A stretch of 64,000 nt of DNA, taken from assembly GCF_006345805.1 (NCBI RefSeq), contig NC_043007.1, forward strand, positions 19,406,001 through 19,470,000, given 5' to 3'. The notes beneath the pieces were generated by a model that worked only from the letters and a program-made list of their open reading frames with translations, had not been told where the DNA came from and ran no database searches. Below are positions 1 to 22,030 of the stretch, in pieces; the first letter of the stretch is position 1; each line of letters begins with the position of its first letter. The stretch comes from Octopus sinensis. Its lineage: Eukaryota. The translations under genes were made by a program, and so were the position numbers.

Positions 1-179
1 GTCTGGCACTTGTGCAGGTGGCACGTAAAAAGCATCCACTACACTCACGGAGTGGTTGGCATTAGGAAGGGCATCCAGCTGTAGAAACACTGCCAGATCA
101 GAGGTGGCCTGGCGCAGCCTCCTGGCTTCTGAGAACTGTCCAACCCATGCTAGCATGGAAAACGGACGTTAAACGATGA

Positions 180-183
<4 letters not shown>
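1..183 (+). mobile_element. 3' end of RTE-clade LINE (family D) with (GAT)n tail
   Basis: GGTGGCACGTAAAAAGCA...GGAAGGGCATCCAGCTGTAGAAAC...CATGGAAAACGGACGTTAAACGATGATGAT. The same 3' end is joined to RTE coding sequence at 51466-52288. Other approximate copies: 6150-6295+, 7975-8150-, 12515-12740-, 13360-13700-, 15910-16152-, 22320-22610-, 30640-30870-, 31740-31972+, 41305-41392+, 41500-41625-, 43940-44130-, 54606-54787+, 59650-59812+, 60160-60720-. Confidence 0.85.
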
Positions 184-237
<54 letters not shown>

Positions 238-625
238 ATAGTTAAATAGATAGACAGACAGATAGATACAGGCATAGCTAGATAGACAGAGAGTCAAAAA
301 GATAGCTAAATAGATGAATAGACAGAGAGATAGGTATGCGCATGCGCACACACAAACTACAGTTTATACAGCTTATATAATTGTCATATGAAAAGTGTCA
401 CAACAGAAGAGTGGGGGTGGGAGCGGGGGGTGGGAATGGGGGGGGGGGAGGTGTCTGCACACATTCAGGAAAAACGAAAAATAAAAAAAAGAAAGGGGAA
501 AAAGAAAAAGAAACATATCTTTGTGTCCGTATATAATAATGTATACACCTTCCTATTGCCGTGAGGAATATTCAACCATATTATATGTGAGCCTGTGTGT
601 GTGTGTGCGCACACGCATGTGTATG

Positions 626-676
<51 letters not shown>

Positions 677-1134
677 TATATATATATATATATGGGTATA
701 TAATATATATATATATATGGGTATATATATATATATATATATATATGGGTATGTATGTGTATGTATATAAGTATATAAATATATGTGTTTGTGTGTGTGA
801 GTATATATACACATATATATATACATATGTGTGTTTGTGTGTGTGTGTGTGTGTGTTTATTTGTGTATGTGTATAAATATATATATACACACATACATAC
901 ATACATACATTCATACATACACACACAGAGTCATAGTATGGAGAGAGGAAGGACAAGAGATCTAACTGAGCCGATAATAAGAGGAGAGTGTTTATTGATG
1001 GTGGTGGTGGTGGCGGTAGTATTAGTGGTGGTGGTGGTAATACCAACAGCTGGAGTGGTCCCAGCAACACTGTCACCGGCAATGTTTATACAGGAGGGCC
1101 AGGCGCACTACACACACACACACACACACACACA

Positions 1135-1165
<31 letters not shown>

Positions 1166-2050
1166 CACACACATATGCACACGCATTGCAGTTTATATGT
1201 AATGATATATAATCCATACATATACACACATATACATACATGTAAGCAAACAGACAGACAGACACACACACACACACATGTACACACATATGCAAATACA
1301 GCTGCCACAGGCAAAAACTTACGCATTCATGCAAACACACACACACACACACAAATAGACTCAAGCAAAAACATATACTCTTTATCTTTATTCTTTCTTA
1401 CATATATCTACATACATGTATATACACATATACATACACACAAATACACACACACACACACACACATATGTATATATACACATATATACACACATATGCA
1501 TACATACATATACATGAATATATATATATATATATACATATGTTTATACATTTACATACATATGCATACATATATACACATACATCAACACATATATATA
1601 TATAAATATATTCATACATACATACATACATACATACATACTACATACATACGCACTACATACATACATACACACACACTACATACATACATACACACAC
1701 ACACACATACATACATACATACATATATATATACATACATATATAAACAAACATGCATACATATACATACATATGTATGTATGTATATACATATATGTGT
1801 GTGAAAGTATATATATACATAAATACATATCTATATATTTATGTATGTATGAATGTATGTATATATATATGTCTGTGAAAGTGTGTGTGTGTATGGATGT
1901 ATATATGTATGTATATACATATAAATGTATGTGTAAGTGTGTGTATATATATGTGTGTGTGTGTTTGTGTATATATATATGTGTGTGTATATATATATGT
2001 ATGTATGTATGTATATGCCGAATGCACATATACATACATATATACACAGT
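184..2050. repeat. Compound (TA)n/(CA)n/(TACA)n microsatellite field with a short (GGT)n run
   Basis: Directly visible. It accounts for the Y/I/H/T and V/C/M/Y ORFs. Confidence 0.95.
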
Positions 2051-2199
2051 GACCTAAGTAGAGACAGACAGACAGACAGTAATGGAGAAGCAGAGAGAGG
2101 GTAGTGCATCGGAGGTGCAATGCAGCTGTGTCTCTCCCATACTTCAATACCTTTGGCTGTGAATGTTTCACTGAGTGGTCTACCAACCAGCAAAGTGTT

Positions 2200-3030
2200 A
2201 TGTCTACACCATCCACTACCACCACCACCACCACCACCACCACCACCACCACCACCACAAACAATAACAACAACAACAACAACATTTATTTAGACCATCA
2301 GCACTAACTCTAATACCAACAGCTGATAGCATTACTCTAGTCATTTTGCAACACCACCACCACCACCACCAACACCACCACCACCACCACCAATACCACC
2401 ACTACCACCACCGCCGCCACCACCACCACTACCACCGCCATTGACAGCAACAGCTGATTAGTCTAACAATACTACTAACTCCTGATTGCACTACCACCTT
2501 CATCTAACGCCATCACGACCACCATGACAACCACAGCCACTACAACTGTTACGACTATTGTCATCGCTACCACAACTGTTGCCTCCGCCACAACCATCAT
2601 CATCACCACCACCACTAAAACCACTACCACTATTATCATCACCACCACCACCACTACAACTACAACTAATACTACAACTATAACTGCCAGAACTATCACC
2701 ACAACCATCACCACCATGATCACTGCCAACATCACCACTACCACCCACACCACCACCATAACCACTACTGCTGCCACTGCCATCACTACCATCATAACCA
2801 CTACTGCTGCCGCCGCCACCACCACCATAACCACTACTGCTGCCGCCACCACCACCACCACCATAACCACTACTGCTGCCGCCGCCACCACCACCATAAC
2901 CACAACTACTACCACCGCCACCACCACCATAACCACTACTGCCGCCACCACTACCACAATCACTACCACTGCATCTACCACAACAAATACAACCACCACA
3001 ACTACCACCGCCACTGCCACCACACTATAT
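2200..3030. repeat. Degenerate (ACC/ACT/GCC)n trinucleotide array
   Basis: Directly visible. It gives the spurious poly-Thr and poly-Val ORFs. Confidence 0.9.
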
Positions 3031-3109
3031 AACTATTACAACACTGATACTTCAGCACAGCCTCACAACACTCCACCATTACAATGTCACCTCAGCATTT
3101 TCCCACGAA

Positions 3110-3775
3110 TCAACCAGAGGCGCTCTACATGGTTGCTCAGTCTGCTAGAAACAGCAGCCATATCGCTTTTAAATCACATTCAAATCTCTTCAAAAAAACA
3201 GGAAGGACAGACCGGATAAAGTAGTCCAAGATACACTGTGCTTGAAGAAAAATCTAAACACCAACTGGATAGTCGTAGGACTTTGATCATTGGTGCTGCT
3301 TGGTCAAGGCCGACCTAGGGCTAAACAGCAACAAATGTTACGATAGTGATCCATGGAGGGTCCCTCCAGTAACAGAAATAGCAGTCAAATCTCTCTTGTG
3401 CTACATCTTGCTGTCTTTAAAAAGGAAATTAGGCATTGGATAACGTACATAGTCCTATTTATATATTATCTCAATGGGACTGTCATGGCTGGAATATCTT
3501 AAATGAAAGGTATGCTTGAGGCTAAACAACAGCAGCATGATCACTAACCGACTAACAAGGTAACCTCTATGGGGTTAGTCTATCTGCTAGAAATAACAAC
3601 CAAATTTCCCTTGGAGGCTATGCAACATTCTTCAAAAATTGAAGGATACAAGTACGATATAATATAGTCTCAGTGTATAATATAGTGTAAAAAAAAAATG
3701 GGATGGTCACATCTGGAACACATGTAACTATAAGTTTGCCTCTATGTGAGCTGACCTGGGGTTAGAATGTAACAA
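3110..3775 (+). mobile_element. Three decayed tandem copies of an interspersed repeat (family E) ending ...GGGCTAAACAAC(AAC)n
   Basis: Recurrent motifs CTAGAAA(C/T)AGCAGCCAAAT, GGATGGTCATGGCTGGAAT and GACCTGGGGCTAAACA. Also at about 6405-6600-, 18040-18215+, 24930-25010-, 37110-37170+, 45900-46215+ and 63780-63960-. Confidence 0.65.
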
Positions 3776-4281
3776 CAGCACTCACACACTCAAATAGATA
3801 TTCATAAATGCACAGACATATACACACACATACACATAAGTTCACACGCATTCAATATGGAAAAAAAATGCCTCACAAACACAGGGGCACATATATACAC
3901 ACATACACAGATACACAAACATATGCATGCACGTGCACACACACAAGTGCACACACACAAGTGCACACACAAATACCATAAACACATACATCAATGTACG
4001 ATGGTTGCTTCCATCTCGTATAAGACATCTGCGCTTCACTTGATGCTATCGTGGCACATGCTTCTATGACATGTGTGCCACCCTTTTAATACCAAGTGAC
4101 AAGCAAGGGCAAGATCAGTAAGGACCACTTTCTATAAAAAGGGATTTTCTTTTAGATTTTCCCAATAGAAAGATACTATTAAGTGAGCAAGGGTTTGGTT
4201 TTGCAGTTTCCCTTACTTTAAGGGGTTTTACTGAAAACGTAGATACAAATCTGGGTATTTCTATGATCCCCATGCCTTACA

Positions 4282-4443
4282 CCATACTTTAACATGTATA
4301 AGGAACCCTTTTTTGTCGAAAATTAGGTTTAAAAAATATGGGAATTTCTTATACATGGATAGCATTATAATCCCTTACAAAACCTTTTTTCAAAATTTTA
4401 AGCACCCAAAATTAGGGGGTTCTTTATACATGTTAAAATATAG
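4282..4443. mobile_element. Tc1/mariner-type MITE relic
   Basis: About 24-bp terminal inverted repeats TACTTTAACATGTATAAGGAACCC / GGGTTCTTTATACATGTTAAAATA. The right end is followed by TA. Confidence 0.6.
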
Positions 4444-4469
4444 TATATATGATATATACAGCCTTATAT

Positions 4470-4622
4470 ATGGTTGTATGGTAAGAAGCCTGATCTTCAA
4501 CAACATGGTTCTGGGTTCAGTTCCGATGTGTGGCACCTTGGGCAAGTGTTTTCTACTATAGCCTTGGGCTGACCAAAGCTTAGTGAGTGTATTTGGTATA
4601 CAGAAACTGAAAGAAGCCCATC

Positions 4623-4658
<36 letters not shown>

Positions 4659-5500
4659 ATGAATATGGTACTTAATTTAGATGCACCAGAATTTTGTATG
4701 GTGTTATCCATAAAAATTTGCGGGGTGATTATAATCAAAAATAAGCAACAAGAATGACTCCGGTAATTTGGTACAATTGTTTTGCACTACAACACTTTAT
4801 TAAAAGTTGTAAGTGTGAAACAATTGTACCAAATTACCGGAGTCATTCTTGTTGCTTATTTTTGTATATATATATATATAGAGTAAAGGAATTTTGTTAA
4901 CATCTTCGTTCGACTCCATTCTTTAATTTATTCATATACAACACACAAATTTCTGCACATGAACCCGGAGTTTCTACCCTTGGACAGGTCGCTTCAACCG
5001 TGTTTCTGACGTGAATTTGCTACCCTGGTTTCGGTTCAACGAATTTTCCATGCTGACGATAAACATAGGATAATTCATTCACCTATTTATATATATATAT
5101 ATATATATATGTATATAATTTCCATACAGAGCAAATAATTCACGAGAAAAAATAAATCACGGGAAAATAATTTGTGAAGGTATCATTGACTCTATTATTA
5201 TGTAGTGTAACAATTTGAAAATGATAACAGAATTTATAATATAGGTGATTGCAGGTCCCCAAAAAAAGTATTAAATACATATATGTATGTATATCTATAT
5301 GTGTGTATGTTTCTGTCTGGGTTTGTACCCTTACCATTGGTATTGGTATTTGCATCCCTGTAACTTAGTGGTTCAGCAAAAGAGACTGATAGAATAAGTG
5401 CCAGGCTTAAAAAATAAGAACTGGGGGTCGATTTATTTTACTAAAAATTCTTCAAGGCAGTGCCCCAGCATGGCCACAGTCTAATGATTGAAGCAAGTAA
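4470..5500 (+). mobile_element. SINE family B split by insertions in its internal microsatellite (5' half about 4470-4625, 3' half about 5325-5500)
   Basis: GGTTCAGTTCC...GGCACCTTGGGCAAG...GAAAGAAGCCC, and later CCCTGTAACTTAGTGGTTC...GCATGGCCACAGTCTAATGATTGAAGCAAGTAA. Confidence 0.75.
4736..4864. repeat. Perfect 47-bp inverted repeat (hairpin, 35-nt partly paired centre)
   Basis: 4736-4782 is the exact reverse complement of 4818-4864. Confidence 0.95.
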
Positions 5501-5679
5501 GAGGTACGAGATGAATGTAGAAGATGACCTGGCTGTGCAGTAAAGAAGGGTGCTTTGCAGCAGATGGGTGGGGGCGGGGTTTAATCCCATTGTGTGTCAT
5601 TTTGGGGGAAAGTCTTTTACTGTAGCCCCGGGTTGACCAAAGCCATGTGGGTGGAATTGGTAGAGATGGAAAGGGAAAG

Positions 5680-6056
5680 AAGTCTGTGTATGTGTGTATG
5701 TAGGTATGTGTGTATGTATGTATGTGTGTATATATATGTGTGTGTGTAAGTGTGTGTGCATGTATGTGTGTAAGTATATATATGTGTGTGTGTATGTGTG
5801 CATATGTGTGTAAGTATATATGTGTGGGTGTGTACATGAATGTATGTATGTGTATATGTATGTATGTGCATGTGTATATATGTGTGTAAGTATATGTGTG
5901 TGTGTGCGTGTATGTATGTATGTATGCATGCATGTATGTGTGGGTGTATGTATGTGTGTGTATATGTGTGTATGTATATATATGTGTGTTTCCATGTATG
6001 TGTCTATGTATGCATGCATGTATATGTATGTATCTACGTGTTTATGTGTGTAAGTA

Positions 6057-6092
<36 letters not shown>

Positions 6093-6135
6093 TGCATATG
6101 TGTGTGTATGAGACAGAGAGAGAGAGAGAGAGTGA
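5680..6135. repeat. (TG)n/(TATG)n/(GA)n microsatellite field
   Basis: Directly visible. Confidence 0.95.
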
Positions 6136-6974
6136 GAGAGCATGTGTGGGTGGTTGAGTCTCCTTGTTTTGACATTGGAAAATATTGCCTTGCCAGGAGA
6201 CAGGGAAGGGCATCTAGCTGTAGAATCTCTGCATCATTAAACTCTGTCTGACCCATGCAGGCACGGAAAAATGGATGTTAAAACAGTCATGATGACGCAC
6301 GTGTGTGTGTGTGTGTGTAGATATAAGAATAGCGGTGTCGCAGTGGAAGTATAGGTGTGCTACTATGAACGAGTAGCTGTGCCACAATGTTGTTATGATC
6401 ATTGTGCAACCCTAGGTTGACCATCACTGAGCACAGTTATTATCAAAAGGGTCTAGCCATGACCATCCCATCCCTTTTGCTTTTTCCCAAATATCTAACA
6501 CTTGGTGAACCATTGTCTGAGAAATTTCATCTTTTTAAAATGATAGGACATTTAAAGAGCATTTGGCTGTGATTTCTAGCAGTTCAAGCAATCCTGGTTA
6601 GAGCATGTAGCAGTAGAATTATGTTGAACTATAACTATGTTTAGTGTGGAAAAGTATGGAAGAACATACATCATCTGTTAGGCTTTTATTCTTTCTCTCA
6701 CTCTCCTTGACTTTAGTAAAAGACACTGGCCGGGTATGGAAGGTGATACACTGTGTCAGGATTTCACCCTACCTCTTTTAGTCACCCCCACCTCACTTCT
6801 TGTCTATCTGTCTGGCTATCAATTGTTTTGTATATATCTCTGTTCGTTCTCTTGAATATTTAGTCATATATTCAAATATCTGTGTCTGCCAACCAGTGAA
6901 TCTGATGGCCTGTTAGTTAGCTCATCAGTCTGCCTGCCTGCTTGCCTGCTTGCCTGTCTGAGTGTCCTTCAAGT

Positions 6975-7380
6975 AGTCAGTCTGTCAGTCTGTTTGTCTG
7001 TCACATAATTAATCTGCCTATCTGTCCGATAGTCCTAGTCCGTCAGACTGTCTGTCACTCAAACAGTCAACCAGTCCATCTGTCAGACAGTCAATCAGCT
7101 TATCTGTCTGTCAATCAGTCTGTCAGTCTGTTTGTCTGTCACATAATTCATCTGCCTATCTGTCCGATAGTCCTAGTCCGTCAGACTGTCTGTCACTCAA
7201 ACAGTCAACCAGTCCATCTGTCTGACAGTCAACCAGTTTGTCTGTCTGTCAGTCCGTTTGTCTGTCACATAATTAATCTGCCTATCTGTCTGATAGTCTG
7301 TCAGACTGTCTGTTGTTCAAATAGTCAATCTGTCAGACAGTCAACCAGTTTGTCTGTCTGTCAATCAGATTGTCAGTAAC
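6975..7380. repeat. About 138-bp higher-order tandem repeat built from GTCT/GTCA units (about 3 copies)
   Basis: CAGTCTGTCAGTCTGTTTGTCTGTCACATAATT recurs at 6978, 7116 and, shortened, near 7245. Confidence 0.8.
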
Positions 7381-7878
7381 GCTACCTCTATATTTACCTG
7401 GCTGTTTGAACCTGTTTGTCCAACTCACTCAGTTTATTTGTTTGTTTCCTGACTCTTCCATCTGTCAACCATTTTGACTGCTTGTCTGTCAATCTACCTG
7501 GCAGTCAATCTGCCTGCCAGTCAAAACTACCTACCCATCTATATTAGTTGATTAGTTCATCCGTCGGCCAACCTATCTATCCACTTTATATGTCTGTGTC
7601 ATGATTTGGAAGTCCAATGTAATTTGATATACTGAGTTCTAGCGAGTTTTGAATAAATTAATGCATAAATAGCCACCAAAGAAGTGTGTGTGCGTGTGTG
7701 AGTGTGTGTATGAGTCTGTTTATGTAAATACTTGTGAGATCAGCTCAAGAAAGGACCTCCCCGAGTGGGACCTTGCCTTGTCAGGTAATTTTCAACACCT
7801 TTCTCGGGTTGCTCATGTATAAAGAGTTTAGCTTTTTGGCATGGCATTTGTAAACTGTCCAAGACGGATGAACTAATA

Positions 7879-7913
<35 letters not shown>

Positions 7914-8175
7914 AATAATAATAATGATAATAATAATAATAATAATTAATGATGATAATAATAATAGTAATCATCATCATCATCATCATTTAGCGTCCGT
8001 TTTCCATGCTAGCATGGGTTGGATGGTTCAACTGGGGTCTGTGAAGCCGGAAGGCTTCATCAGGCCTAGTCAGATCTGGCAGTGTTTCTACGGCTGGATG
8101 CCCTTCCTAACGCCAACCACTCCGTGAGTGTAGTGGGTGCTTTTTACGTGCATATAATAATAATAATAATAATAA

Positions 8176-8204
<29 letters not shown>

Positions 8205-8206
<2 letters not shown>

Positions 8207-8685
8207 CTTTCTTTTATATGTACAAGGCCTGCAATTTTGTGGGAGGGGACATGTTGATTACATTAACCCAGAATTTCACTGGTACTTATTTTATCAACCC
8301 TGAAGGGATGAAAGGCAAAATTGATCTTGGTGGGATTTGAACTCAGAATGTAAAGACAGATGAAATTCTGCTAAGCATTTTGCCTGGCATGCTAACGATT
8401 CAGTCAGCTCACTGCCTTAATAATAACAATAAATAATAATAATTATTATTATTTCTACTTTCAGTACAAGGCTTTGAAAATTATGGGGTAGGGGCTAGTT
8501 GATTATATCGACCCCAGTGCGTAACTGGTACTTATTTTATCAACCACGAAAGGGTGAAAGGAAAAGTCGACCTTGGCAGGATTTGAACTCAGAATGTAGC
8601 AGCAGATGAAATGGTGCTAAGCATTTCGACTGGTGTGCTAATAATTCTGCCTGCTCACCACCTTAATAATAATAACAACAACAAA

Positions 8686-8739
<54 letters not shown>

Positions 8740-8953
8740 GGTTTTAAATTTTGCCACAGTGGCAGCAGTTTTGGGGGAGGGGATGAGTCAATTACATCAA
8801 CCCCAGTGTACAATTGGTACTTATTTGATTGACCCCAAAAGGATGAAAAGTAAATTCAACCTCGGTGGAATTTGAACTCAGGACATAGCGACAGGCGAGA
8901 TACCACTAAGCATTTCGTCCAACATGCTAACGATTCTACCAGCACACCATCTT
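8205..8953 (-). mobile_element. Three same-orientation copies of tRNA-derived SINE family A separated by (AAT)n (8205-8418, 8452-8664, 8739-8953)
   Basis: Reverse complement of GGCGGTGAGCTGGCAGAATCG (box A), GAGTTCAAAT(T/C)CC (box B) and CCTTTCATCCTTTCGGGGTCGATAAAATAAGTACCAG. The central block resembles the recalled Meta/Sauria-SINE domain. Confidence 0.85.
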
Positions 8954-8959
8954 AATTAT

Positions 8960-9458
8960 AATTATAATAATAATAATGTGCATGTATGTATGCATTTATG
9001 AATGTACATATGTATGTATGTATTTATGTATGTATGCATGTATGTGTGTATATATGCATGTATGCATATATGTATGCATGTAAGTGTGTGTGTGTGTGTG
9101 TGTGTGTTGTGTTTTGTGTGTGTATTGCTATGCAGTTTACAAAAGCAAAGAAAAATTCCTCAAATTCAAAAGTGTAAATATTTATTGTAGGGTTGATATG
9201 GCAAGTAATCTTAGAACTGCAAACACACACACACACACACATATGCACGCACACTCACACACACACACACAAACACACGTTCTGGGTCTGTGTATAAAGG
9301 AAATTTATGTATATTTTATACATATGATAATAATGTATGCATATGCACACACTCACATGCGTGCACGTGCATGCACACACATACAGATAGAGCCATATTT
9401 ACACAAGCCAAATATTTGTGTACTTAACATCGTGAAATACACACACACACATATATAT

Positions 9459-9499
<41 letters not shown>

Positions 9500-9716
9500 C
9501 ATATATATATATACATACATATATATAATACATACATATATATATAACTCATATATATAATATATATAATACATATATATATATATACATACATATATAT
9601 ATATACATACATATATATATATATACATACATATATATATATATAGACATACATATATATATATATACATACATATATATATATAACATACATATATATA
9701 TATATATAATATATAC

Positions 9717-9749
<33 letters not shown>

Positions 9750-9756
9750 CATACAC

Positions 9757-9791
<35 letters not shown>

Positions 9792-10153
9792 CATACACAT
9801 ATATATATATATATACATACACATATATATATATACATACACATATATATATATATACATACACATAATATATATATATATATATATATACATACATACT
9901 ACATATACATATATATATATATAATATACATACATACATATACATATATATATATACATACATATACATATATATATATACATACATATATATACATACT
10001 TACATACATACATATATATATATATACATACATACACACACACATATATATATACATACACACACACACATACATATATACATACATACACACACATACA
10101 TATATACATACACACACATATATATATACATACATACACACACACATATACAT

Positions 10154-10186
<33 letters not shown>

Positions 10187-10225
10187 CATACATATACATA
10201 TATATACACACATACACACACAATT
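8960..10225. repeat. (TA)n/(TACA)n/(CA)n microsatellite field
   Basis: Directly visible. Confidence 0.95.
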
Positions 10226-10672
10226 TATTTCTATCTTAACTCCCTTCTGTCTCTATAAAATATGCTGTGTGTGTGTCTGTGTGTGTGTGTGTGTATCATT
10301 CTCTCTTTATCACCTACACACAACACATGCAAATGTATTTCACAGTATAAAATCAAATAAGAAAAAAAATAAAATAAAATAAAGCAACAACAAAAAAAAC
10401 ATACAAACAACGTTTATCCAGTCTCTGGTTGAAAATCTCTGCTAAATTTAGAAGACAGCGGCGCCATCTACTATGTAACTATTGATTTATACCTATTTTG
10501 GCTACATTCTGTCCGACCAAGTCCAAGATGCCTCCATTAGCACCTATTTCCATTAGAATCACTGTCAGTATATGTCTGTCTGCGTTAACACTTTTTAAGC
10601 ATTAGCTTCTTTGGGGGTGGGCCAGCAAGGAAGGATTTTATGTGGTTGGTTAACCTGCAAAGAACGAAATCT

Positions 10673-11340
10673 AAATATCGCTCCTGTCACTTCTTACTGT
10701 TTTCAAGAGAAAGACACAATTGATAATATATTCCAAGATACACAATGCCAGAAAATAGTTGCTAAATATCCCCCCTGTCACTTCTTACTGTTTTAAAGAG
10801 AAAGTCACAGTTGATACTCTTACTCTTTTACTCTCTTTTACTTGTTTCAGTCATTTGACTGCGGCCATGCTGGAGCACCACCTTTAGTCGAGCAACTTGA
10901 CCCCGGGACTTATTCTTTTTGTAAGCCCAGTACTTATTCTATCGGTCTCTTTTGCCGAACCGCTAAGTAACGGGGACATAAACACACCAGCATCAGTTGT
11001 CAAGCAATGCTAGGGGGACAAACACAGACACACAAACACACACACGCATATAAATATATATACGATGGGCTTCTTTAAGTTTCCGTCTACCAAATCCACT
11101 CACAAGGCTTTGGTCGGCCCAAGGCTATAGTAGAAGACACTTGCCCAAGGTGCCACGCAATGGGACTGAACCCGGAACCATGTGGTTGGTAAACAAGCTA
11201 CTTACCACACTCCAAGATAAACAATGCCAGAAAATAGTAACTAAATATCCCTCCTGTCACTTCTTACTGTTTCAAAGAGAAAGACACCATTGATAATGTA
11301 TTCCAAGATACACAATGCCAGAAAATAGTTGCTAAATATT
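10673..11340. repeat. 91-bp tandem repeat (about 4 units) interrupted by a SINE
   Basis: AAATATC..CCTGTCACTTCTTACTG... starts at 10673, 10764, 11243 and 11334. Confidence 0.9.
10816..11210 (-). mobile_element. SINE family B, near full length
   Basis: Reverse complement of the head GTGTGGTAAGTAGCTTG...GGGTTCAGTCCCA...CCTTGGGCAAGTG, an internal CA/TA tract, and the tail GCATGGCCGCAGTCAAATGACTGAAACAAGTAAAAGAG. Confidence 0.9.
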
Positions 11341-11765
11341 TCTCACATCACTTTTTACTTTCTTGTAGATAATGAAGTCCAAGATACTCAATGGTTGGGA
11401 ATAATGACAGAATGGACATAAACGAGTTATTCCAACAAGATTTCGCTGAATTATTATTAGTGGGTGCCAGCCATAGAAACCATACCAAAGTAGACACTGA
11501 AACAAGGAACAGTCCTCCAACTTGTCAGATCCTATTAAATCATACAACCCAGGTCATCCTGTGTGGAAACCAGATCTAACACACAGAGGATTTGTCCAAG
11601 TCTCCAATCTGGATTCTGTCTGTGTCTGACTTAGAATTTCTTAAACCCTTTGGCATTCATATTACTCTATTAAATGTGATGTATGTTTGTTCCACTTGCT
11701 TTAAATTAATCATGTATTATCTTATAGCTTCAAGATTTCGACGATGTGATTGTTTACTCCAAGAG

Positions 11766-12071
11766 TTTGTTTGTTCCTTGTCGAGCCATGCCTGGCTCAT
11801 AAGGGCCGGTTTCCCGGTTTCATTGGCATATAGGTTCCCCACCTGGACGGGACGCCGGTCCATCGCAGGTGAGCTGCAAAGATGCAGGAGGAAAGAGTGA
11901 GAGAAAATTGTGGCTAAAGAGTCAGCAGAAGTTCGCCACTACCTTCTGCCAGAGCCGCATGGAGCTTAGGTGTTTCGCTCATAAACACACACATCGCCCA
12001 GTCTGAGATTTGAACCTGCGTTCCCTTGACCACGTGTCTGCTGCTCTAACCACTAGGCCATGTGCCTCCAC
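11766..12071 (-). mobile_element. tRNA(Arg-like)-derived SINE family C with V-domain-like core
   Basis: Minus strand GTGGAGGCACATGGCCTAGTGGTTAGAGCAG...GGTTCAAATCTCAG and CTGCGATGGACCGGCGTCCCGTCCAGG. Copies at 17084-17396-, 44333-44638-, a variant at 48150-48541- and an older relative at 54873-55125+. Confidence 0.85.
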
Positions 12072-13986
12072 ATTCACACATGCCTTACACACATATACTC
12101 ATACATACACACATATATGATTACATACACACACACACACACATGCATACAGGCTTGCATGCACATTACATGTGCTTGCACACGTACACACACACACACA
12201 CACACAAAGAATCGAAAAGAATTGTAAATTGCAGACAGTTTATTTAGAACCAGATTAATCAAGGTGAGATATTTATTTTTTTTAAGATGGAAAGGTGTAA
12301 ATTAACTCTTTTCATAGCAACCCACCAGGGACCAACCTTAGTTCCATCATATGAACTTAGTGTTTTAAAACATTCTAAATTAAAAGCTTTCATCAAAATT
12401 TCTTGCTAATTTCATTACAAACATCAGCTTAATAACAACAATTGTCATTTTACTAAATTCTTCATTCTTTAAAAAATTTATTGAAACAAAATCTGTGAAT
12501 TTTGACAGACATCATCATCATCATCACCATCGAATGTCTGTTTTCCATGCTGGCATGGGTTGGACAGTTCGAAAGAAGATGGTGAACAAGAGAACTGCAC
12601 CCAGCTCCAGTGTCTGTTTTGGCAGGATTTCTATGATTGGGGGCCCTGTCTAATGCTAATCCCTTCTTTTTATGAGTGACCTGAGTACTTTTTATGTGGT
12701 AATGACACCAGAGGGGTCATCAAGAAACTCGTAAGACGAAATGAAAGAGACAAGGGATATTTAGTTGTTATTTCTAGCCTATCAAGCAATGAATAAAGGC
12801 CTCTTGCCTTATAAAGCTTTGTTCAGTCACCCCAGTCATACATACATACATACATATACATACATACATACATACATACATGCATGCATGCATGCATGCA
12901 TGTATACTTATATATATTTGACACTGGATTACTAGAATTGGTAGAAAGACAAAATGCATTGCACTGATGGTTGCTTTCCAAGTTCAAATCCCACCCAGGA
13001 TGATTTCACCTTCCCTTCATTCTGAGGTCACTAAAATATAAGTAAGTACCAGCTTTTCAAGTACCAGGATCAATATATCTGTCTGCACACCAGCATGGCA
13101 ACAGATCAATAACTGAAACCAAGTAAAAGTGTTGAAGAACATATATATGTACATGTGTGTGTATGTGTCTGTACTTGTAAATATATATATATTTATTTAT
13201 TTATTTATTTATTATATATATATATATTTATTTATATATATATATTTATTTATATATATTTATTTATATATATATTTGTTTATTTATATATATATTTATT
13301 TATATATATATACACACACACACACACATACATACACACATAAAATGTATAGTGTTATCATCATCATCATCATAATTATCTTTGTTTCACGTCTGCTTTC
13401 CATGTTCACATGGACTAGACAGGATGTCATAGTTGGAGGTCAAAAGGACAATATTTTGCTTGCTCTTCAGTTTTAACAGAGTTCCTGTGGTCGGATGGCC
13501 TTCCTAACACCAACTATTTTTTCAGAGCATACTATATGTGGCTTTTTCATGGCACCAGCACAAGAGAAGCTTCTGCGTCCTCGGCAATATAAAAGAGGGA
13601 TCACAACATTACTCACTTCACAGTGTACTGAATGTGTTTTCCATGAATCCAGAGAAGTACTAAAGGGGTGGTCATGTCCTTAAGAGGTGGCCTAAATACA
13701 TCTAAAAGGGCATTGTGATTCCATATCTCTGCTTGTTTGTCAACCCTGTCCACAGAGAGCGATGCATATGTGATAGAGGCATAAATATTAGTGATAAGCG
13801 GAGGTCACAGTATTGCGAGATAAGCATCATGATTTGTAGGAACTGCAAGATATAGATAATGGTGATAAGATGCTCAACTAGAGAGGAAAGAATGATGACA
13901 AAGGAACATGACGGAGCAAATAGACCAATGATACGGACCCAGGATGTATGGAGATAAAAGGAAAAAGAACATGCTGGTATATGCAA

Positions 13987-14150
13987 ATGAATATATCATG
14001 ATGATGAGATGAATATATTATGATGATGTGATGAATATATTATGATGATGAGATGGATATATTAAGATGATGAGATTGATATATTATGATGATGAGATGA
14101 ATATATTATGATGATGAATATATTATGATAATATATTATATTATGATGTA
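13987..14150. repeat. 22-bp minisatellite ATGAATATATTATGATGATGAG (about 6 units)
   Basis: Units start at 13987, 14009, 14031, 14053, 14075 and 14097. Confidence 0.9.
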
Positions 14151-14487
14151 ACTGAAGCAGCATTAAGATAGCCCCTTATATATCATAGTTTATGGATATA
14201 CACTGTTGACAGGTGACATTCTTCAGGTCTTTATGCAGCCTGGAGCCTATTTTTGATGTCCACGAATGAATTACTTAGTGTGGCCTATATACTGGAGGAG
14301 ATATGTCTTGTCTAGGCAAGTGGCTGTGAGTAGATACCATTGATGAGGCCATTGGCCATCTTACCACTGTGTGGTCCAATGTTCAAAAGGTGCTTTTTAC
14401 GTGTCAATTATGTGATATCATCATCAGCCAAGACTATGATTTCACTTGGCTTCACAGGTCTCCTCAAACACAACATATCGCCAAAAA

Positions 14488-14520
<33 letters not shown>

Positions 14521-14624
14521 CATACATATATATATATATATGCATAAATGTGTATATATGTGTGTGTGTGTGTGTGTGTGTATAAACCTTTCTCTATTTT
14601 CTCTCCCTGTTCATTTCTGTGTTC

Positions 14625-14660
14625 CTTTCTGTCGAAGAGTGTAGGCTCGAAACATAAAAT
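14625..14660 (+). ncRNA. Decayed hammerhead-like motif in a Penelope-type repeat (about 14590-14760)
   Basis: CTTT-CTGTCGA-A-GAGT-GTAG-GCTC-GAAAC-ATA-AAAT, a CpG-decayed version of the copy at 58891. Confidence 0.55.
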
Positions 14661-14756
14661 ACTTCCTCACTTCCCGAGCGTTAAACTAATACATCTGTTT
14701 GTTGTTTACACACCCGACTTCATCTTTTGTTTTGTTTGTTTTTTTTTGTAAATTCC

Positions 14757-14799
<43 letters not shown>

Positions 14800-14802
<3 letters not shown>

Positions 14803-15075
14803 GGTGTATCTCAAAAATAAAAAAAAACAAAAGTTTTACTGTTAATAATTTACATTCCATTTTTTTCATTTGACCCATTAGAAATAATGAAAGGAACCAG
14901 GCTAAGCTTTGAACAAATGAAATATGTCCTAAAGGGCTACTGGGAGTTTGTAGATGTAGTTGAAGTGCAAAGAAGACCCTTCAGAAGGGAGTCTGAAACA
15001 GATCCATCAGCTTAACCTTCCTTTGAATTAGAGATAAATTTGGAGCAATGGAAATGTTCAAAATGTCCACAGCAA
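14800..15075 (+). mobile_element. 5' fragment of a Tc1/mariner-superfamily transposon (DUF4817-like HTH start, pseudogenised)
   Basis: TA followed by CAGGGTGT TIR start. ATG at 14887 gives MKGTRLSFEQMKYVLKGYWEFVDVVEVQRR..., then frameshifted IRDKF..GNVQNVH. Confidence 0.75.
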
Positions 15076-15780
15076 ATTTAAAGTGCCTTGACTGTAACTA
15101 AACAAGTTTACTCAACCGTGTCGGCCTCCTTTTTAGGTGCAAAATATACTCTCATGTGACACTAACACAGGGATATAGCTCGGGGGGGGGGCGTATAAAA
15201 GGTTCTAAATTTAATCATGTGATAATTCTCTGCAAACATTTGATAGAAAACATTCAGAGCAGTGATTGTATAGACATGTTCAGTCAACTGTGTCAGCCTT
15301 AACTTAAACATTGCCACTTGATACTAACACACTGGTGCAGTGGGGAATCTAGAAAAATTTCTAAGACCAGTCATGTGACTATCCTCTACCAATCAAATCC
15401 TATTTAAAACTTACACTAATTTGAGCCATGAACTCCCTATAAAAATAGGGCAAGCTTCAAACACTGGTCAGAAGCAAGATATATTTCTTTATTGCCCACA
15501 AGGGGCTAAACATAGAGTGGACAAACAAAGACAGACAAACGGATTAAGTCGATTACATCGACCCCAGTGCGTAACTGGTACTTAATTTATCGACCCCGAA
15601 AGGATGAAAGGCAAAGTTGACCTTGGCGGAATTTGAACTCAGAACGTAACGGCAGACGAAATACGGCTAAGCATTTCGCCCGGAATGCTAACGTTTCTGC
15701 CAAAACAAGATAGCTGGGTCTTTCTATTTCAACAACTTTTTGAAAATCCCTGTAAACTGAGAAATTGGTTAAATCCTTAA
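15075..15780 (+). mobile_element. Penelope-like pseudo-LTR, second copy of 42120-42650, interrupted by SINE A (15483-15701, minus)
   Basis: Collinear with the reverse complement of 42180-42650 (ACCAATCAAATCCTAT, GCCATGAACTCCCTATAAAA, GGGCAAGCTTCAAACAC). Degenerate hammerhead at 15736-15773. Confidence 0.85.
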
Positions 15781-16242
15781 CGATAGTGTAACCTTAAGGC
15801 ATCTTCGACCTGATAAGTAGCTGGTTGAGTATCCCTTGTCCAGTAATTATTGCATCAAAAGATCTGCTAGCTAGGAAACATATGTAGCCTGGATTTTACC
15901 TGCTCCACTCATCATCATCGTTTAACGTTTGTTTTCCATGCTGGCATGGGTTGGATGGTTTGATTGAGGGCTGGCAGGCCAGGAGGCTGCACCAGGCTCC
16001 AATCTGATCTGGCAGAGTTTCTACAGCTGGATGCCCTTCCTAACGCCAACCACTCAAAAAGTGTAGTGGGAGCTTTTTACGTGCCACCGGTATGAGGGCC
16101 AATCAGGCGATACTGGCATCGGCCATGCTTGGATGGTGCTTTTCATGTGCCAAAAAATATTTTAACTATTCTCAGCACATCTTCAACATCTATTTTTTCT
16201 CTATGTCTACCCGTGTGGAACAAAATAATTAATTTTTCTATA

Positions 16243-16529
16243 TTCTTTTATCCTTTTTCTTGCTTCAGTTATTTGACTGCAGCCATGCTGGAGCACCACC
16301 TTTAGTCAAACAAATAAGCCCCAGGACTTATTTTTTGTAAGCCTAGTACATCATATATATATATATGATGATCTTTTTTCAGTTTCCATCTACCAAATTC
16401 ACTCACAAGGCTTTGGTTGGCCCGAGGCTATAGTAGAAGACACTTGCCCAAGGTGCCACGTAGTGGAAGTGAACCCGTAACCATGTGGTTCGTAAGCAAG
16501 CTACTTACCACACAGCCACTCCTACACCT
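16243..16529 (-). mobile_element. SINE family B with internal deletion
   Basis: Same motifs as 10816-11210. The middle segment is missing. Confidence 0.85.
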
Positions 16530-17557
16530 ATACAGTTACAGAAAAAAATTTATTACATTTCCTTCTGGCCAACTCAGACAGAATCATGATGACACTGTAT
16601 GTCACAATACTGTAGGTTACTGAATTACAGGCAGACCCCCACCCCCACCGGGTGTGCTTCTGCACAGTTTCCATCTATCCACTTTTACTCACAAGGCATG
16701 GATTAACCTGAGGACCTGAAGATATAGAAAATGACATCTGCTCCATGTGCCATACAGTAGAATTGAACCCGGGATCTCATGGTTGTGAAGCAAACTTCAT
16801 AACCATTCAGCTATATGTTACAGATAAAATAATTCCAATCTAAAATGAGGAGGGATGAGGGAATAAAGAAAAACAAAGAATGCTTTATTCACAATGATGT
16901 ATATTCAAATTGTGTCAGATTTGAAGCTAAAGTTTATGAATCTGAGAAATAGAGCAGAAAACCTCTTCTTAGATATAACATTTTAGCAAGGAGATTGTTT
17001 GTGAATAAAGGAAATTTGTTATGGAGAGTCAGTGAGAACATGAGCACTGGTTCGGATTATAAAAAGAGGTGTAGACAATAAAAGTTGTTGTTTGTTTCTT
17101 CTCGAGCCACGCCTGGCTCATAAGGGCCAGTTTCCCAGTTTCCTTGGCGTATAGGTTCCCCACCTGGATGGGACACCGGTCCGTCACACGTGAGCTGCAA
17201 GATGCTGGAGGAAAGAGTGGGAGAAAGTTGTGGCAAAAGAGTCAGCAGAAGTTTCGCCATTACCTTCTGCCGGAGCCGTGTAGAGCTTAGTTAAATGTTT
17301 CGCTCATAAACACACACATCTCCTGGTCTGAGATTCGAACCCGCGATCCCTCGACCACAAGTCCGCTGCTCTAACCACTAGGCCATGTGCCTCCACAGAC
17401 AAAAAGAGTTGGAAATTATGGAGTAGAATGTTATCATTGAAGCGCCTGTGTCTGTGATTCTCACTTTTAATACCTGCACCAGATCCAAAATCTGGATTTT
17501 TTTTGTGGGGATGGGTAAGGGGTGAGGGGCTGCACCAAAAAGGTTACGACAAATCAG

Positions 17558-17965
17558 TTACTCTTTTACTTGTTTCAGTCATTTGACTGTGGCCATGCTG
17601 GAGCACCGCTTTTAGTCGAGCAAATTGACTCCAAGGCTTATTCCTTGTAAGCCTAGTACTTATTCTATTGGTCTCTTTTGCCGAACCGCTAAGTTACGGG
17701 GACGTAAACACACCAGCATCAGTTGTCAAGTGATGTTGGGGGGGGGGGGCAAACACAGACACACAAATATATACACACACACACGTGTATATATATATGT
17801 GCGATGGGCTTCTTTCAGTTTTCGTTTACCAAATTCACTCACAAAGTTTTGGTCGGCCCGAAGCTATAGTAGAAGACACTTGCCCAAGGTGCCACGCAGT
17901 GAGTGTGAACCTGGAACCATGTGATTGGTAAGCAAGCTACTTACCACACAGCCACTCCTACGCCT
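17558..17965 (-). mobile_element. SINE family B, full length
   Basis: Complete head-to-tail match to the family. Confidence 0.9.
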
Positions 17966-18324
17966 ATACAGTTACAGAAAAAAATTTATTACATTTATAG
18001 AGGGAAAACCGTTGGGAACTGCTGCAAACTGCTGATCTATGTAGTCATCCAAATTGCTAGAAACAGCAGCCAAATATTTTTTTCGTACTCTGCAATCTTA
18101 GAAAATGGCAGAACATGCTGCATGACATAGTCCTGAATGTAATAGGTTTGATAAAGATGGGATAACCACAAGGCACAGTCCTTGTTTGTCTGCCTCAATG
18201 AGATCGTTGCCAGAGCAACAAGCTGGTCTTCTTAGCATTTTGCCCAGCATGCTATCAATTCCGCCATCTTAAATAATAATAATAATAAATAATAATAATA
18301 ATAATAATATAATAATAATAATAA

Positions 18325-18787
18325 CCCCTTCTAAAGGCCTGAAATTTTGGTAGGGATGAGGTAGTCGATTACATCAACCTAGTATTTGGCTAGTACTCTA
18401 TTTTATTAACCCTGAAAGGATGATGGGCAAAGTCAACCTCAGTGGAATTTGATCTCAGAACATGAAGAAGCATGAAATGCTGTTAAGCATTTTGTCTGTT
18501 GCACTCAGGATTTTGCCAACTCACATCCTAAATGATGATAATAATAATAATAATAAGGCAGCGAGCTGGCAGAAACGTTTGCACACCGGGCGAAATGCTT
18601 AGCGGTATTGCGTCTGTCGTTGCGTTGTGAGTTCAAATTCCGCCGAGGTCGACTTTGCCTTTCATCCTTTCGGGGTCGATAAATTAAGTACCAGTTACGC
18701 ACTGGGGTCGATGTAATCGACTTAATCCGTTTGTCTGTCCTTGTTTGTCCCCTCTATGTTTAGCCCCTCGTGGGTAATAAAGAAACA
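18325..18787. mobile_element. Head-to-head pair of SINE family A (18325-18530 minus, 18557-18787 plus)
   Basis: Both carry box B and the GTCGATAAATTAAGTACCAG core in opposite orientations, about 26 nt apart. Confidence 0.85.
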
Positions 18788-18817
<30 letters not shown>

Positions 18818-18818
<1 letters not shown>

Positions 18819-19134
18819 TGTATTGAAAGGGATTTTTGGGGTTTGAATAATTCACCTTTGGAAACATGGGTGTTTCATTCAACATCCTTAAACAACCCTT
18901 ATTCAGGGACCTTTTGAGCAGGATGGGTTACTTGACCAGAAGAAAATTCTAACCGGGCCTCACCTGCAAGGTCATGCGCTGTTTGTCTTGATATGAGATC
19001 ACCATGTCACACACATATGATTGTGATGCATGTGCCTGGTGTACCCTTATCAGATGGGTAGTCATGATGGGTATACTGGGCTTCGTATATTTTACCCCAG
19101 TGTCACTTTGATGGCATGTTCTGCTCTCTCACTC
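18818..19134 (+). mobile_element. Unclassified 317-bp element flanked on both sides by (AAT)n
   Basis: Complex sequence ending CTCTCTCACTC-(AAT)n. Strand inferred by analogy with the neighbouring Dong-like 3' ends. Confidence 0.5.
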
Positions 19135-19170
<36 letters not shown>

Positions 19171-19697
19171 CTTTTCTACTATAGGCACAAGGCCTGAACT
19201 TTTGGGAGAGGGGTCAGTCATTTACATAACACCAGAGCTCGACTTGTGCTTATCTGATTGACCTTGAAAGGCTAAAAAGTGAAGTGACCTTGGCAGCATT
19301 TGAACTCGGAATCAAAAGCTGGAAGAAATGCTGCTGAGCATTTTCTCTGGCATCTAAATGATTCTGCCACCTCACTGGCTTAGTAATAATAAGGGTTTCA
19401 CATTTTGGCACGGGCTAGCGATTTTAGGGAAAGGGATACGGGATCAACCGGTACTTATCGACCCCGAAAGGATGAAAGGCAAATTCTGCCACGGTGGAAT
19501 TTGAACCCAGAACATAAAGACGGAAGAATTGCCATTCGACATTTTACCCAGAAGTAATGGCATTAAGCATTTTGCTAACGATTCTGTCAGTTCACAACCT
19601 TAATAATAATAATAATATAATAATAATGATAATACAACAATCTCACGATATTTTATACTGTGCGACGTTTATAATAATAATGATAATAATAATAATA

Positions 19698-19911
19698 AAA
19701 CATTCAGACAAATGCATAACAAAAGCACCGGGACTTACAAGTATATATAACATACAGAAAATAGCACTGCTAGGCACTGCACACGTCCTACACAAAACCC
19801 TTTCAATACAGTGAAAATAAGAGCATCACAACAAACCACAGCACATACCCAAGGCACACAGTGCTGCGCTCGGTAGTGAAGTGAAAGCACGCTATAAAAA
19901 TAAAACTACTG
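19698..19911 (+). mobile_element. 3' end of an R4/Dong-clade LINE inserted in (TAA)n
   Basis: KHSDKCITKAPGLTSIYNIQKIALLGTAHVLHKTLSIQ* matches the recalled C-terminal IQK.ALLGTA.ILRK.L motif. A short 3'UTR then (AAT)n follows. A second 3'UTR-only copy is at 19965-20061. Confidence 0.85.
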
Positions 19912-20076
19912 AATAATAATAATAATAATAATAATGATAATAATAATAATAATAATAATAATAACCATCAGAGCATCACAACAAATCACAGCACATACCC
20001 AAGGCACACAGTGCTGTGCTCAGTAGTGCAGTGAAAGTACGTGATAAGAACAAGACTACTGAATAATATGCTGAGA

Positions 20077-20401
20077 TTCCTTCGGTCATGACTGATCATG
20101 GAATTGCACCTAGAAAGTTACCCTCCCAGGCACAAGTCTGGGCAAGGTTGTTTAAGGAAGACCAGCAGTCGCCCATGCATACTGGCCTTCTCTCTCCAAG
20201 CCACTGATGTTATCCAAGGGAAAGGCAAAGGGGCCGATACAGCTTGGCACCTGTGACGTTGCATCTCATTTCTACAGCTGAGTGAACTGGAGCAACGGGG
20301 AATAAAGTGTCTTGCTGAAGAACACAACATGCAGCCAGGTTTGGGATACGAACTCACAACGTCACGATCATAAGCTCGACACTCTAACCACTGAGCCATG
20401 A
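20077..20401 (-). mobile_element. tRNA-derived SINE family G
   Basis: Minus strand CATGGCTCAGTGGTTAGAGTGTCG...GAGTTCGTATCCC...GCAAGACACTTTATT...GCTCCAGTTCACTCAGCTGTAGAAATGAG. A copy at 25243-26160+ is interrupted, and a head alone lies at 27876-27953-. Confidence 0.85.
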
Positions 20402-20629
20402 ATAATAATAATAATAATAATGAAAGCAATAGATATAAATAATCCTTTCCCCTGGAGCACAAGGCCTCAAATTTGGGGGAAGGGATTAAGTCGATTACAT
20501 CGACCCCAGTGTGTAACTGGTACTTATTTAATCGACCCCCCACCACCATAAAAAAGGATGAAAGGCAAAGTCGACTTCAGCGGAATTTCAATAGAAATAG
20601 ATAATAAAAACAAAAGTAATAAAAATAAA

Positions 20630-21035
20630 GGCGTAGGAGTGGCTGTGTGGTAAGTAGCTTGCTTACGAACCACATGGTTCCGGGTTCAGTCCCACTGCGT
20701 GGCACCTTGGGCAAGTGTCTTCTACAATAGCCTCAGGCCGACCAAAGCCTTGTGAGTGGATTTGGTAGACGGAAACTGAAAGAAGCCCGTCGTATATATG
20801 TATATATATATATGCGTATGTTTGTGCATTGTGTTCCCCCCCACCCAACATTGCTTGACAACAGATGCTGGTGTGTTTACGTCCCCGTCACTTAGCGGTT
20901 CGGCAAAAGAGACCGATAGAATAAGTAGTAGGCTTACAAAGAATAAGTCCTGGGGTTGATTTGCTCGACTAAAAGCGGTGCTCCAGCATGGCCACAGTCA
21001 AATGACTGAAACAAGTAAATGAGTAAATGAGTAAA
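20630..21035 (+). mobile_element. SINE family B, full length, ending about 44 nt from the PLC exon donor
   Basis: GGCGTAGGAGTGGCTGTGTGGTAAG...AAATGACTGAAACAAGTAAATGAGTAAA. Further copies or halves (approximate): 23240-23700+, 23906-24068+, 24147-24580+, 26625-27027-, 27545-27870-, 32050-32270-, 32300-32620+, 35575-35750+, 35945-36350-, 37225-37345+, 38100-38270+, 43760-43915+, 55140-55548-, 55600-56070-, 58690-59165+, 62620-62790+. Confidence 0.92.
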
Positions 21036-21078
21036 GCAATTAAGAATTAATGATAACGATGAATAAAAGTGAACTTAC

Positions 21079-21162
21079 CTCATCCCAACGGTCAAATGTA
21101 TTTCCTTTTAAGAGGGGATCCGGCACTGGGATGCGCCATTGAAACTCAAAGGGCTTGGCCAT
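21079..21162 (-). CDS. PLCB4: First coding exon of phospholipase C-beta 4 / norpA-like gene (28 codons, phase-0 intron follows)
   Basis: Minus strand reads GGCACC-ATG-GCC... = MAKPFEFQWRIPVPDPLLKGNTFDRWDE, then GAG|GTAAGT donor (21078-21073). Matches the recalled N-termini of human PLCB4 ([28 protein letters not shown], 15/28 identical by eye) and Drosophila NorpA (W.IPVP..L..G..FDRW). An in-frame TAG lies upstream of the ATG in the same exon. Confidence 0.93.
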
Positions 21163-21256
21163 GGTGCCAGGAATGGTCCGTTGCCTCCAGGGACACTAAG
21201 CTGGGGTGGGGGAATCAGTTATCTGTCAAAGAAGGAAAGAGAAACTTCGGATGAGT
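21163..21256 (-). promoter_or_regulatory. 60-nt 5'UTR part of the exon plus splice acceptor and likely branch point
   Basis: Minus strand: TACTCAT (yUnAy, A about 30 nt upstream) ...TTTCTCTTTCCTTCTTTGACAG|ATAACTG. The exon starts at 21222, implying an upstream non-coding exon at higher coordinates. Confidence 0.85.
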
Positions 21257-21289
21257 AACGAGAATCACCGAAATAAGAAATAAAATACA

Positions 21290-21294
21290 TGGAA

Positions 21295-21392
<98 letters not shown>

Positions 21393-21405
21393 TATAATAA
21401 TAGTA
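21290..21405. repeat. (AAT)n microsatellite just upstream of the PLC exon acceptor
   Basis: Directly visible. It reads (ATT)n in the pre-mRNA. Confidence 0.95.
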
Positions 21406-21599
21406 AAAGTAGCAAATGCAGTCGCAATGAGGATAATATTTTTTTTGTTTTTTTGCCTGGTTTTAATGGTTTTAAAGACGTAAGATATTTACTTGCAGGA
21501 CAAATGAGAAGTTGTGATATTCATGTATTTCTTCCGAGTTGCTAGTATCGTAAATGAAGTATTTTCAAGTTGATTTCACAAACCGGTTTTGATTACAAC

Positions 21600-21875
21600 T
21601 AGCAACACACCACCACAACCACCACCACCACCACCACCACTGCTACTAATACTACTACTACTACCACCACCACCACCACCACCACCACTAATACTACTAC
21701 TACCACCACCACCACCACCACCAATACTACTACTACTACCACCACCACCACCACCAATACTACTACTACCACCACCACCACCACCACCAATACTACTACT
21801 ACCACCACCACCACCACCACCACCACTACTACTACTACCACCACCACCAATACTACTACTACCACCACCACCACC

Positions 21876-21916
<41 letters not shown>

Positions 21917-22030
21917 CACCACCACCACCACTATTGCTAGTACAACTTTCATCTGCCACCACCACCACCACCACCACCATTGCTGGTACAGCTTTCATCT
22001 GCCGCCGCCACCACTGCCACCACCACCTCT
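21600..22030. repeat. Alternating (CCA)n/(CTA)n compound microsatellite
   Basis: Directly visible. Source of the poly-Pro, poly-Gly and poly-Val ORFs. Confidence 0.95.

Follow-up and report, generated by a model that had tools for sequence, protein, structure and literature searches.

The window, by which we mean the whole 64,000-nt stretch of Octopus sinensis DNA analysed here, contains on its minus strand a 144-nt exon (21222..21079) whose coding part, an ATG followed by 27 codons (21079..21162, minus), encodes the 28-residue peptide MAKPFEFQWRIPVPDPLLKGNTFDRWDE, a coding assignment based on homology and codon-position skew. A preliminary description of this DNA had proposed such an exon together with a pyrimidine tract, a CAG acceptor, an in-frame upstream stop, a Kozak ATG and a GTAAGT donor, and all of these could be read directly from the sequence. 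The start codon (ATG, 21162-21160) lies in the context ggcaccATGg, with A at -3 and G at +4. All 28 codons are open, the last being GAG at 21081-21079, and the 5' splice site that follows it in phase 0 (GAG/GTAAGT, 21073..21078, minus; slashes mark exon boundaries throughout) is conserved in relatives. Over both strands of the 64 kb window AGGTAAGT occurs once, this sole copy lying at the exon's donor. The first 12 residues of the peptide form an N-terminal leader, and the remainder corresponds to the initial ~16 positions of the PLC-beta PH domain.

Upstream of the start codon, a 5' untranslated part of 60 nt (21163..21222, minus) contains no upstream ATG and carries an in-frame TAG at 21198-21196. 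The proposed 3' splice site AG (ttctttgaCAG/A, 21223..21224, minus), which sets the exon start at 21222, is preceded by a polypyrimidine tract of 17/17 pyrimidines (21228..21244, minus); only nine CAG sites with at least 15/17 pyrimidines upstream are present on the minus strand of the window. An alternative 3' splice site AG (gattcccccaccccAG/C, 21201..21202, minus), located 38 nt before the ATG and within the exon as first drawn, would move the exon start to 21200. The two acceptors are inseparable by sequence, so that of the exon edges originally proposed, the 5' edge, at 21222 or 21200, is less certain than the 3' edge. The branch point suggested in the same description has a candidate in gTTACTCAT (CTCAT with A at 21252; 21251..21258, minus), ~29 nt upstream of the acceptor AG, which is a weak signal consisting only of resemblance to the yUnAy-type consensus.

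In the list of open reading frames (ORFs), the exon appears only as a 40-aa read-through ORF (21040..21162). It had been described as missed by the ORF track, which is correct to that extent and reflects only that an ORF lister does not pick up exons as short as 28 codons. Neither the exact MAKPFEFQWRIPVPDPLLKGNTFDRWDE peptide nor the 40-aa read-through ORF has an identical entry in the protein and assembly collections, and six other ORFs of the window likewise gave no exact match. The read-through ORF also gave no match in a word-indexed protein search, whose listings span proteins of ~100 to ~900 aa, with none shorter or longer, so this negative does not mean that the peptide is unknown.

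Homology of the exon to PLC-beta N-termini

The 30-residue translation was searched exhaustively with phmmer in a set of 1.84 billion representative proteins. This returned 83 matches at E <= 1e-3, the best genuine ones at 2.6e-8, and nearly all of them cover their own residues 1-30 at 60-79% identity. The genuine matches are of two kinds. Some are spliced N-termini of real PLC-beta proteins, including P0082, which extends into the catalytic X box, and P0044, P0057, P0054 and P0074, which continue ...WDE/E..LEP.CL.KVDEYGFFIYWKSEG; others are genomic read-through ORFs that diverge with a V (the GTx of the donor) right after ...W[DET]E. In a follow-up search with P0044, all returned proteins carried PF17787 (the PLC-beta PH domain), those with names were PLC-beta, and molluscs were closest. 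Aligned with twelve PLC-beta N-termini, the window peptide shows 57-75% identity, and M1, K3, W9, V13, P14, L17, G20, W26 and E28 are invariant across the 13 sequences. P0001, P0008 and a few other long phmmer matches with multiple aligned stretches are repeat proteins and were set aside as spurious.

Searching the window by tblastn with PLC-beta proteins from databases, including the 1083-aa full-length Argiope protein P0124, gave a match only at 21162..21079 (E 5e-10 to 8e-7), the rest of the window remaining at E >= 0.58. N-terminal sequences of NorpA and PLCB4, serving as probes only, likewise matched the window only at 21162..21073 (E 1e-4 and 2e-5; next best 0.6); our conclusions rest on the database proteins. 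In relatives the PH_14 domain begins at residue 13 and spans 13-140, of which exon 1 gives only the first ~16 positions.

At the DNA level, when the window was compared by blastn with every retrieved locus of the relatives, only 21073-21162 matched, at 80% identity to L005 and L006 and 75% to L002, and the flanks and repeats showed no similarity to these loci outside the exon. The 60-nt flanks of the exon had ungapped identities of 0.22-0.42, which is the random level. Substitutions versus the relatives, counted by codon position, were 3/3/12, 3/4/15, 5/6/15 and 4/6/13, corresponding to a third-position excess with one-sided binomial P = 0.004, 0.0009, 0.009 and 0.019, respectively. The flagged stretch is confirmed as a real exon, with signals beyond chance.

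Assignment to the beta4/NorpA orthogroup

Compared with sixteen N-termini of beta4/NorpA type, the window peptide has 12-22 of 28 residues identical, all aligned from Met1, versus 6-10 of 28 for four N-termini of beta1/PLC21 type, which align from target residue 15-17; the BLOSUM62 scores are 71-122 and 32-60, respectively. By group, identities out of 28 are 19 for the bivalve and the gastropod, 15-19 for arthropods, 12-16 for vertebrates, 13 for the nematode and 19-22 for other relatives, a ranking that hints at a mollusc or another lophotrochozoan as the source. The best peptide match and closest spliced relative, P0123 (523 aa, 22/28 identical), contains PH_14 (13-140), PLCB EF-hand, EF-hand-like and PI-PLC-X domains, and its best named matches are PLC beta-4 at 60-68% identity, with beta-1-type proteins at 43-48%. 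The Met1 signature of the PLCB4/NorpA orthogroup, M[AT]K.[FY][ED]F.W...VP..L..G..FD[RQ][WYF].E, is present in the window peptide, and the N-terminus of the PLCB4-like protein P0126 is identical to it at 16/28 positions. Together with the conserved donor, these comparisons bear out the earlier proposal of a PLC-beta4/NorpA-like start exon in minus sense, and assign the exon to the beta4/NorpA orthogroup, the direct test covering 28 residues only. Unlike complete members of the orthogroup, the window shows just these 28 residues; neither the catalytic X/Y boxes nor the C2 and C-terminal domains fall within it.

The other PLC-beta type, comprising cephalopod PLC21 (3QR0, 3QR1), Drosophila Plc21C and vertebrate PLCB1-3, belongs to the same family, and its PH domain opens with the similar core VP..L..G.KF..W.[DE]. 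It differs in a longer leader, MAG....H.VQLKP, which is absent from the window peptide, and the N-terminus of cephalopod PLC21 in the PDB (3QR0, 3QR1) reads IELKWPKVPEQLIKGDKFLKWEE, unlike the window peptide.

If the gene encodes a protein like its orthologues, this protein would act as a Gq-activated PIP2 phosphodiesterase. The PLC21 paralogue is expressed in cephalopod retina as well, so the visual response cannot be credited to one PLC or the other from orthology alone. In Gq/TRP microvillar phototransduction the PLC is NorpA/PLCbeta4, and cephalopod retinas have a PLC component (PMC4255452, PMC6300352, PMC10756192); a role of the present gene in rhabdomeric phototransduction would be an expectation from this literature.

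Conservation of the exon boundaries

The position of the donor after codon 28 (phase 0, W[DET]E/GT) is firmly conserved, reading GTATGT in L001, GTAAGA in L002 and GTAAGT in L005. L001 is an annotated bivalve gene fragment of the PLC-beta PH domain from Sinanodonta woodiana (ACJMK2_035948, protein P0084; GCA_046254885.1), and its exon 1 likewise consists of 28 codons, ending FDRWDE/GTATGT and encoding a peptide identical to that of the window at 19/28 positions, with a pyrimidine tract and CAG shortly before the ATG. The 149 codons of this gene are distributed over 88 kb, its introns being 9.4, ~42 and ~31 kb long, and the first of these separates exon 1 from exon 2 (ECSLLEPNCLVRVDEYGFFIYWKSDGK). 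Intron 1 is thus shorter in the bivalve than in the window (9.4 kb versus >21 kb), as is the 5' untranslated segment (27 nt versus 60, or 38, nt), and a mini-uORF, ATGCCATAA, directly after the bivalve acceptor has no counterpart in the window.

A second genomic locus, the ENA contig L002, has an exon 1 of the form CAG/(25 nt)ATG...GATGAG/GTAAGA, and its exon 2 (ECSALESGCLVKVDEYGFFIYWKSEGK) follows 5.3 kb downstream, after tttccAG. The transcript contig L003 (Logan SRR7235721), which is the source of P0123, reads ...TGGGATGAG-GAATGTTCTGC, showing exon 1 joined to exon 2, and its first base is the base directly after the L002 acceptor. The relative represented by L002 and L003 differs from the window in its intron 1, at only 5.3 kb versus >21 kb, and in having no DNA similarity to the window outside the coding exon.

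On the 5' side, L005 reads ttcatttCAG/(28 nt)ATG...GATGAG/GTAAGT, while L004, in which exons 1 and 2 are spliced, nevertheless retains tttgtttCAG upstream of a 27-nt untranslated region. In L001, L002, L004 and L005 a pyrimidine tract and CAG precede the ATG by 25-28 nt, and each of the five species compared, the window included, has an acceptor-like site at a distance of 25-60 nt from the ATG on its 5' side. The use of this upstream acceptor is less firmly shown than its recurrence, and since L004 is spliced yet retains the CAG, the acceptor may not always be used. As a separate observation, a minimal uORF sits right after the acceptor in three relatives (L001, 9973-9985, CAG/ATGCCATAA; L002, 9976-9984, CAG/ATGCAGTAA; L004, 27-32, CAG/ATGTGA); L005 has an out-of-frame upstream ATG instead, and the 60-nt untranslated region of the window has no ATG.

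Sequence downstream and upstream of the exon

The intron that follows this first coding exon runs off the window, which holds 1..21072 (minus) of it; this stretch contains no match to exon 2 or later parts of PLC-beta and is full of microsatellites and SINE-like copies. Motifs of exons 2 and 3 ([DE][EDN][YFCL]GFF, GFF.xW, Q[VI][NS]D[IV]R and others) were found in no frame of the window, and full-length PLC-beta queries detected no second PLC-beta exon in it by tblastn, in agreement with the earlier statement that 1-21072 holds no second coding exon. As no other PLC-beta exon is present down to position 1, the downstream intron is longer than 21,078 nt, which upholds the proposed length of more than 21 kb. 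The rest of the PLC-beta gene, namely the remainder of PF17787, the EF-hands, PI-PLC-X/-Y, C2 and the C-terminal coiled-coil, would lie beyond position 1.

Across the upstream 42.8 kb no further exon was identified in the window, and a CpG-island scan found no unique-sequence island or other promoter signal adjoining the exon. CpG-rich blocks coincide with tandem repeats in all but two short cases, and with the blocks almost all being tandem repeats, no promoter is callable. Of the earlier inference that the window is essentially two long introns of this gene, the downstream half is thus supported; the upstream sequence could be intron, or it could hold a non-coding first exon and the promoter. 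A scan for sigma-70 promoters and terminators gave counts below shuffle expectation, the model being irrelevant for a eukaryotic locus.

Gene model and alternative explanations

Taken together, we consider it very probable that the minus-strand segment from 21222 (or 21200) to 21079 is the first coding exon of a PLC-beta gene in the beta4/NorpA orthogroup and is joined by splicing to an exon 2 beyond the window. The exon then comprises a short segment of 5'UTR and 28 codons that start with the initiator ATG, in a strong Kozak context, and cover the N-terminal leader together with the first strand region of the PH domain. Its phase-0 consensus donor would join an exon 2 of ~27 expected codons (E[CS]..LE..CLVKVDEYGFFIYWKS.GK), located more than 21 kb downstream and outside the window, and the acceptor just upstream of the ATG would imply at least one non-coding exon further 5'. 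Transcription and splicing in Octopus sinensis would then proceed as proposed here, and the exon would be linked to a complete PLC-beta gene.

The implied non-coding exon depends on the acceptor being used. Transcription might instead start just upstream of 21222 and leave the acceptor unused, which would make this the true first exon and the upstream 42.8 kb promoter or intergenic sequence. Such a start would agree with L004, which is spliced at the exon 1/2 junction yet has the pyrimidine tract and CAG upstream, with the bivalve gene model, which begins at the ATG, and with the window, in which no upstream exon is identifiable. We nevertheless regard it as unlikely, as the pyrimidine tract and CAG recur in five species though the flanks are otherwise unconserved, L003 starts right after the L002 acceptor, as if the assembly graph branched at a splice junction, and no unique-sequence CpG island or promoter signal adjoins the exon.

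The open frame and the intact Kozak context, donor and acceptor also make it improbable that the segment is an orphan or pseudo-exon, that is, a relic of a partial duplication of a PLCB4-type 5' end detached from functional downstream exons. A single exon in 64 kb, in surroundings saturated with repeats and relics of transposable elements, might give that impression, and a third-position skew versus distant orthologues is also expected in a recently dead copy; long introns, however, are normal for this gene, as the 149 codons over 88 kb in the bivalve illustrate. A processed pseudogene was considered separately and rejected: similarity stops exactly at the GT donor, without exon-2 sequence, and beyond it the chance residues VSSLL follow.

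That the exon starts the other paralogue, of beta1/Plc21C/PLC21 type (3QR0, 3QR1), is more doubtful still and was rejected. The ...VP..L..G..F..W.E core is common to both types, whose introns probably coincide in position, but the lower identity to PLC21-type proteins (6-10/28 from target residue 15-17, against 12-22/28 from Met1 for beta4), the different N-terminus of cephalopod PLC21 in the PDB and the missing MAG....H.VQLKP leader all argue against it. That both the open frame and the splice-like signals arose by chance, for which one might cite an exon of only 28 codons and the failure of the bare peptide to match Pfam or PDB (28 aa being too short for HMMER filters), is effectively refuted by E values of 5e-10 in the window and 2.6e-8 against 1.84 billion proteins, the Met1-to-Met1 alignment, the conserved exon boundary and the codon-position structure.

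Read as the first coding exon of a beta4/NorpA-type gene, the segment settles the strand (minus) and the gene context in which the window is to be read, with the repeats and other features of 1-21072 lying within a very long intron of PLC-beta. The ATG at 21162 and the donor at 21079/21078 provide a precise anchor for checking the gene model of the species. There is a small chance that the exon is absent from the current gene model or replaced there by a different start, reflecting an annotation gap or an alternative first coding exon, in which case the predicted PLCB4/NorpA-type protein has a wrong or variant N-terminus and PH-domain start. Beyond this possible annotation value there is nothing new in the exon, which is an ordinary one of a well-known gene; in molluscs and other animals, PLCB4/NorpA orthologues were documented before, as were their N-terminal exon and long introns.

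Repeat content of the window

The window has 39% GC and a CpG observed/expected ratio of 0.40. Microsatellites (85 TRF rows) and two families of SINE-like copies dominate it, alongside tandem arrays of 115-nt, 184-nt and smaller units. All ORFs of at least 150 aa are low-complexity or repeat translations, no RNA family was found in the window with Rfam, and Pfam searches of ten of the more complex open frames (stop-to-stop, at least 70 aa) gave only a sub-threshold C2H2 finger. These results fit a window that is non-coding apart from the PLC-beta exon.

Apparent decayed relics of transposons or genes are found at 61038-61271 (+), 40600-40973 (+) and 30403-30480 (-). Among them, one open frame resembles what we take to be the C-terminus of a mariner-type transposase (...HSPDLVPSVYHLF...) and another presumably the tail of a reverse transcriptase, both without a Pfam match, and a single C2H2 zinc finger falls below the Pfam cut-offs.

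The exon's immediate upstream neighbours, taken in gene direction, are a 112-nt (ATT)n microsatellite (21295-21406) and a ~420-nt array of (GGT/CAC)n type (21608-22025), which account for the long pseudo-ORFs of poly-Y, poly-V, poly-P and poly-G among the listed ORFs. The 115-nt tandem array (29069-29733; 5.8 copies, 94% identity) has a CpG observed/expected ratio near 1.0, versus 0.40 for the window. Arrays of 63- and 67-nt units (22902-23095 and 33359-33715) appear related, with GCACGTAAAAAGCACC-type cores in opposite orientations.

The first SINE-like family is ~220-240 nt long and has ~17 sizeable copies in both orientations at 72-90% identity, including 20793-21030, 17554-17771, 10833-11060, 24361-24574, 32044-32285 and 55155-55378, among others; its translation recurs in many ORFs as ...IYQIHSQGFG.PEAIVEDTCPRCHAVGLNPEPCG..., and the copy at 20793-21030 begins ~45 nt downstream of the exon's donor. 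The second family has ~20 copies, also in both orientations (15469-15702, 18567-18785, 45629-45849, 50397-50800 and 46241-46921), and among them are a tandem of 3.7 copies of a 184-nt unit with 97% identity (46241-46921) and a 183-nt dimer at 50435-50800.
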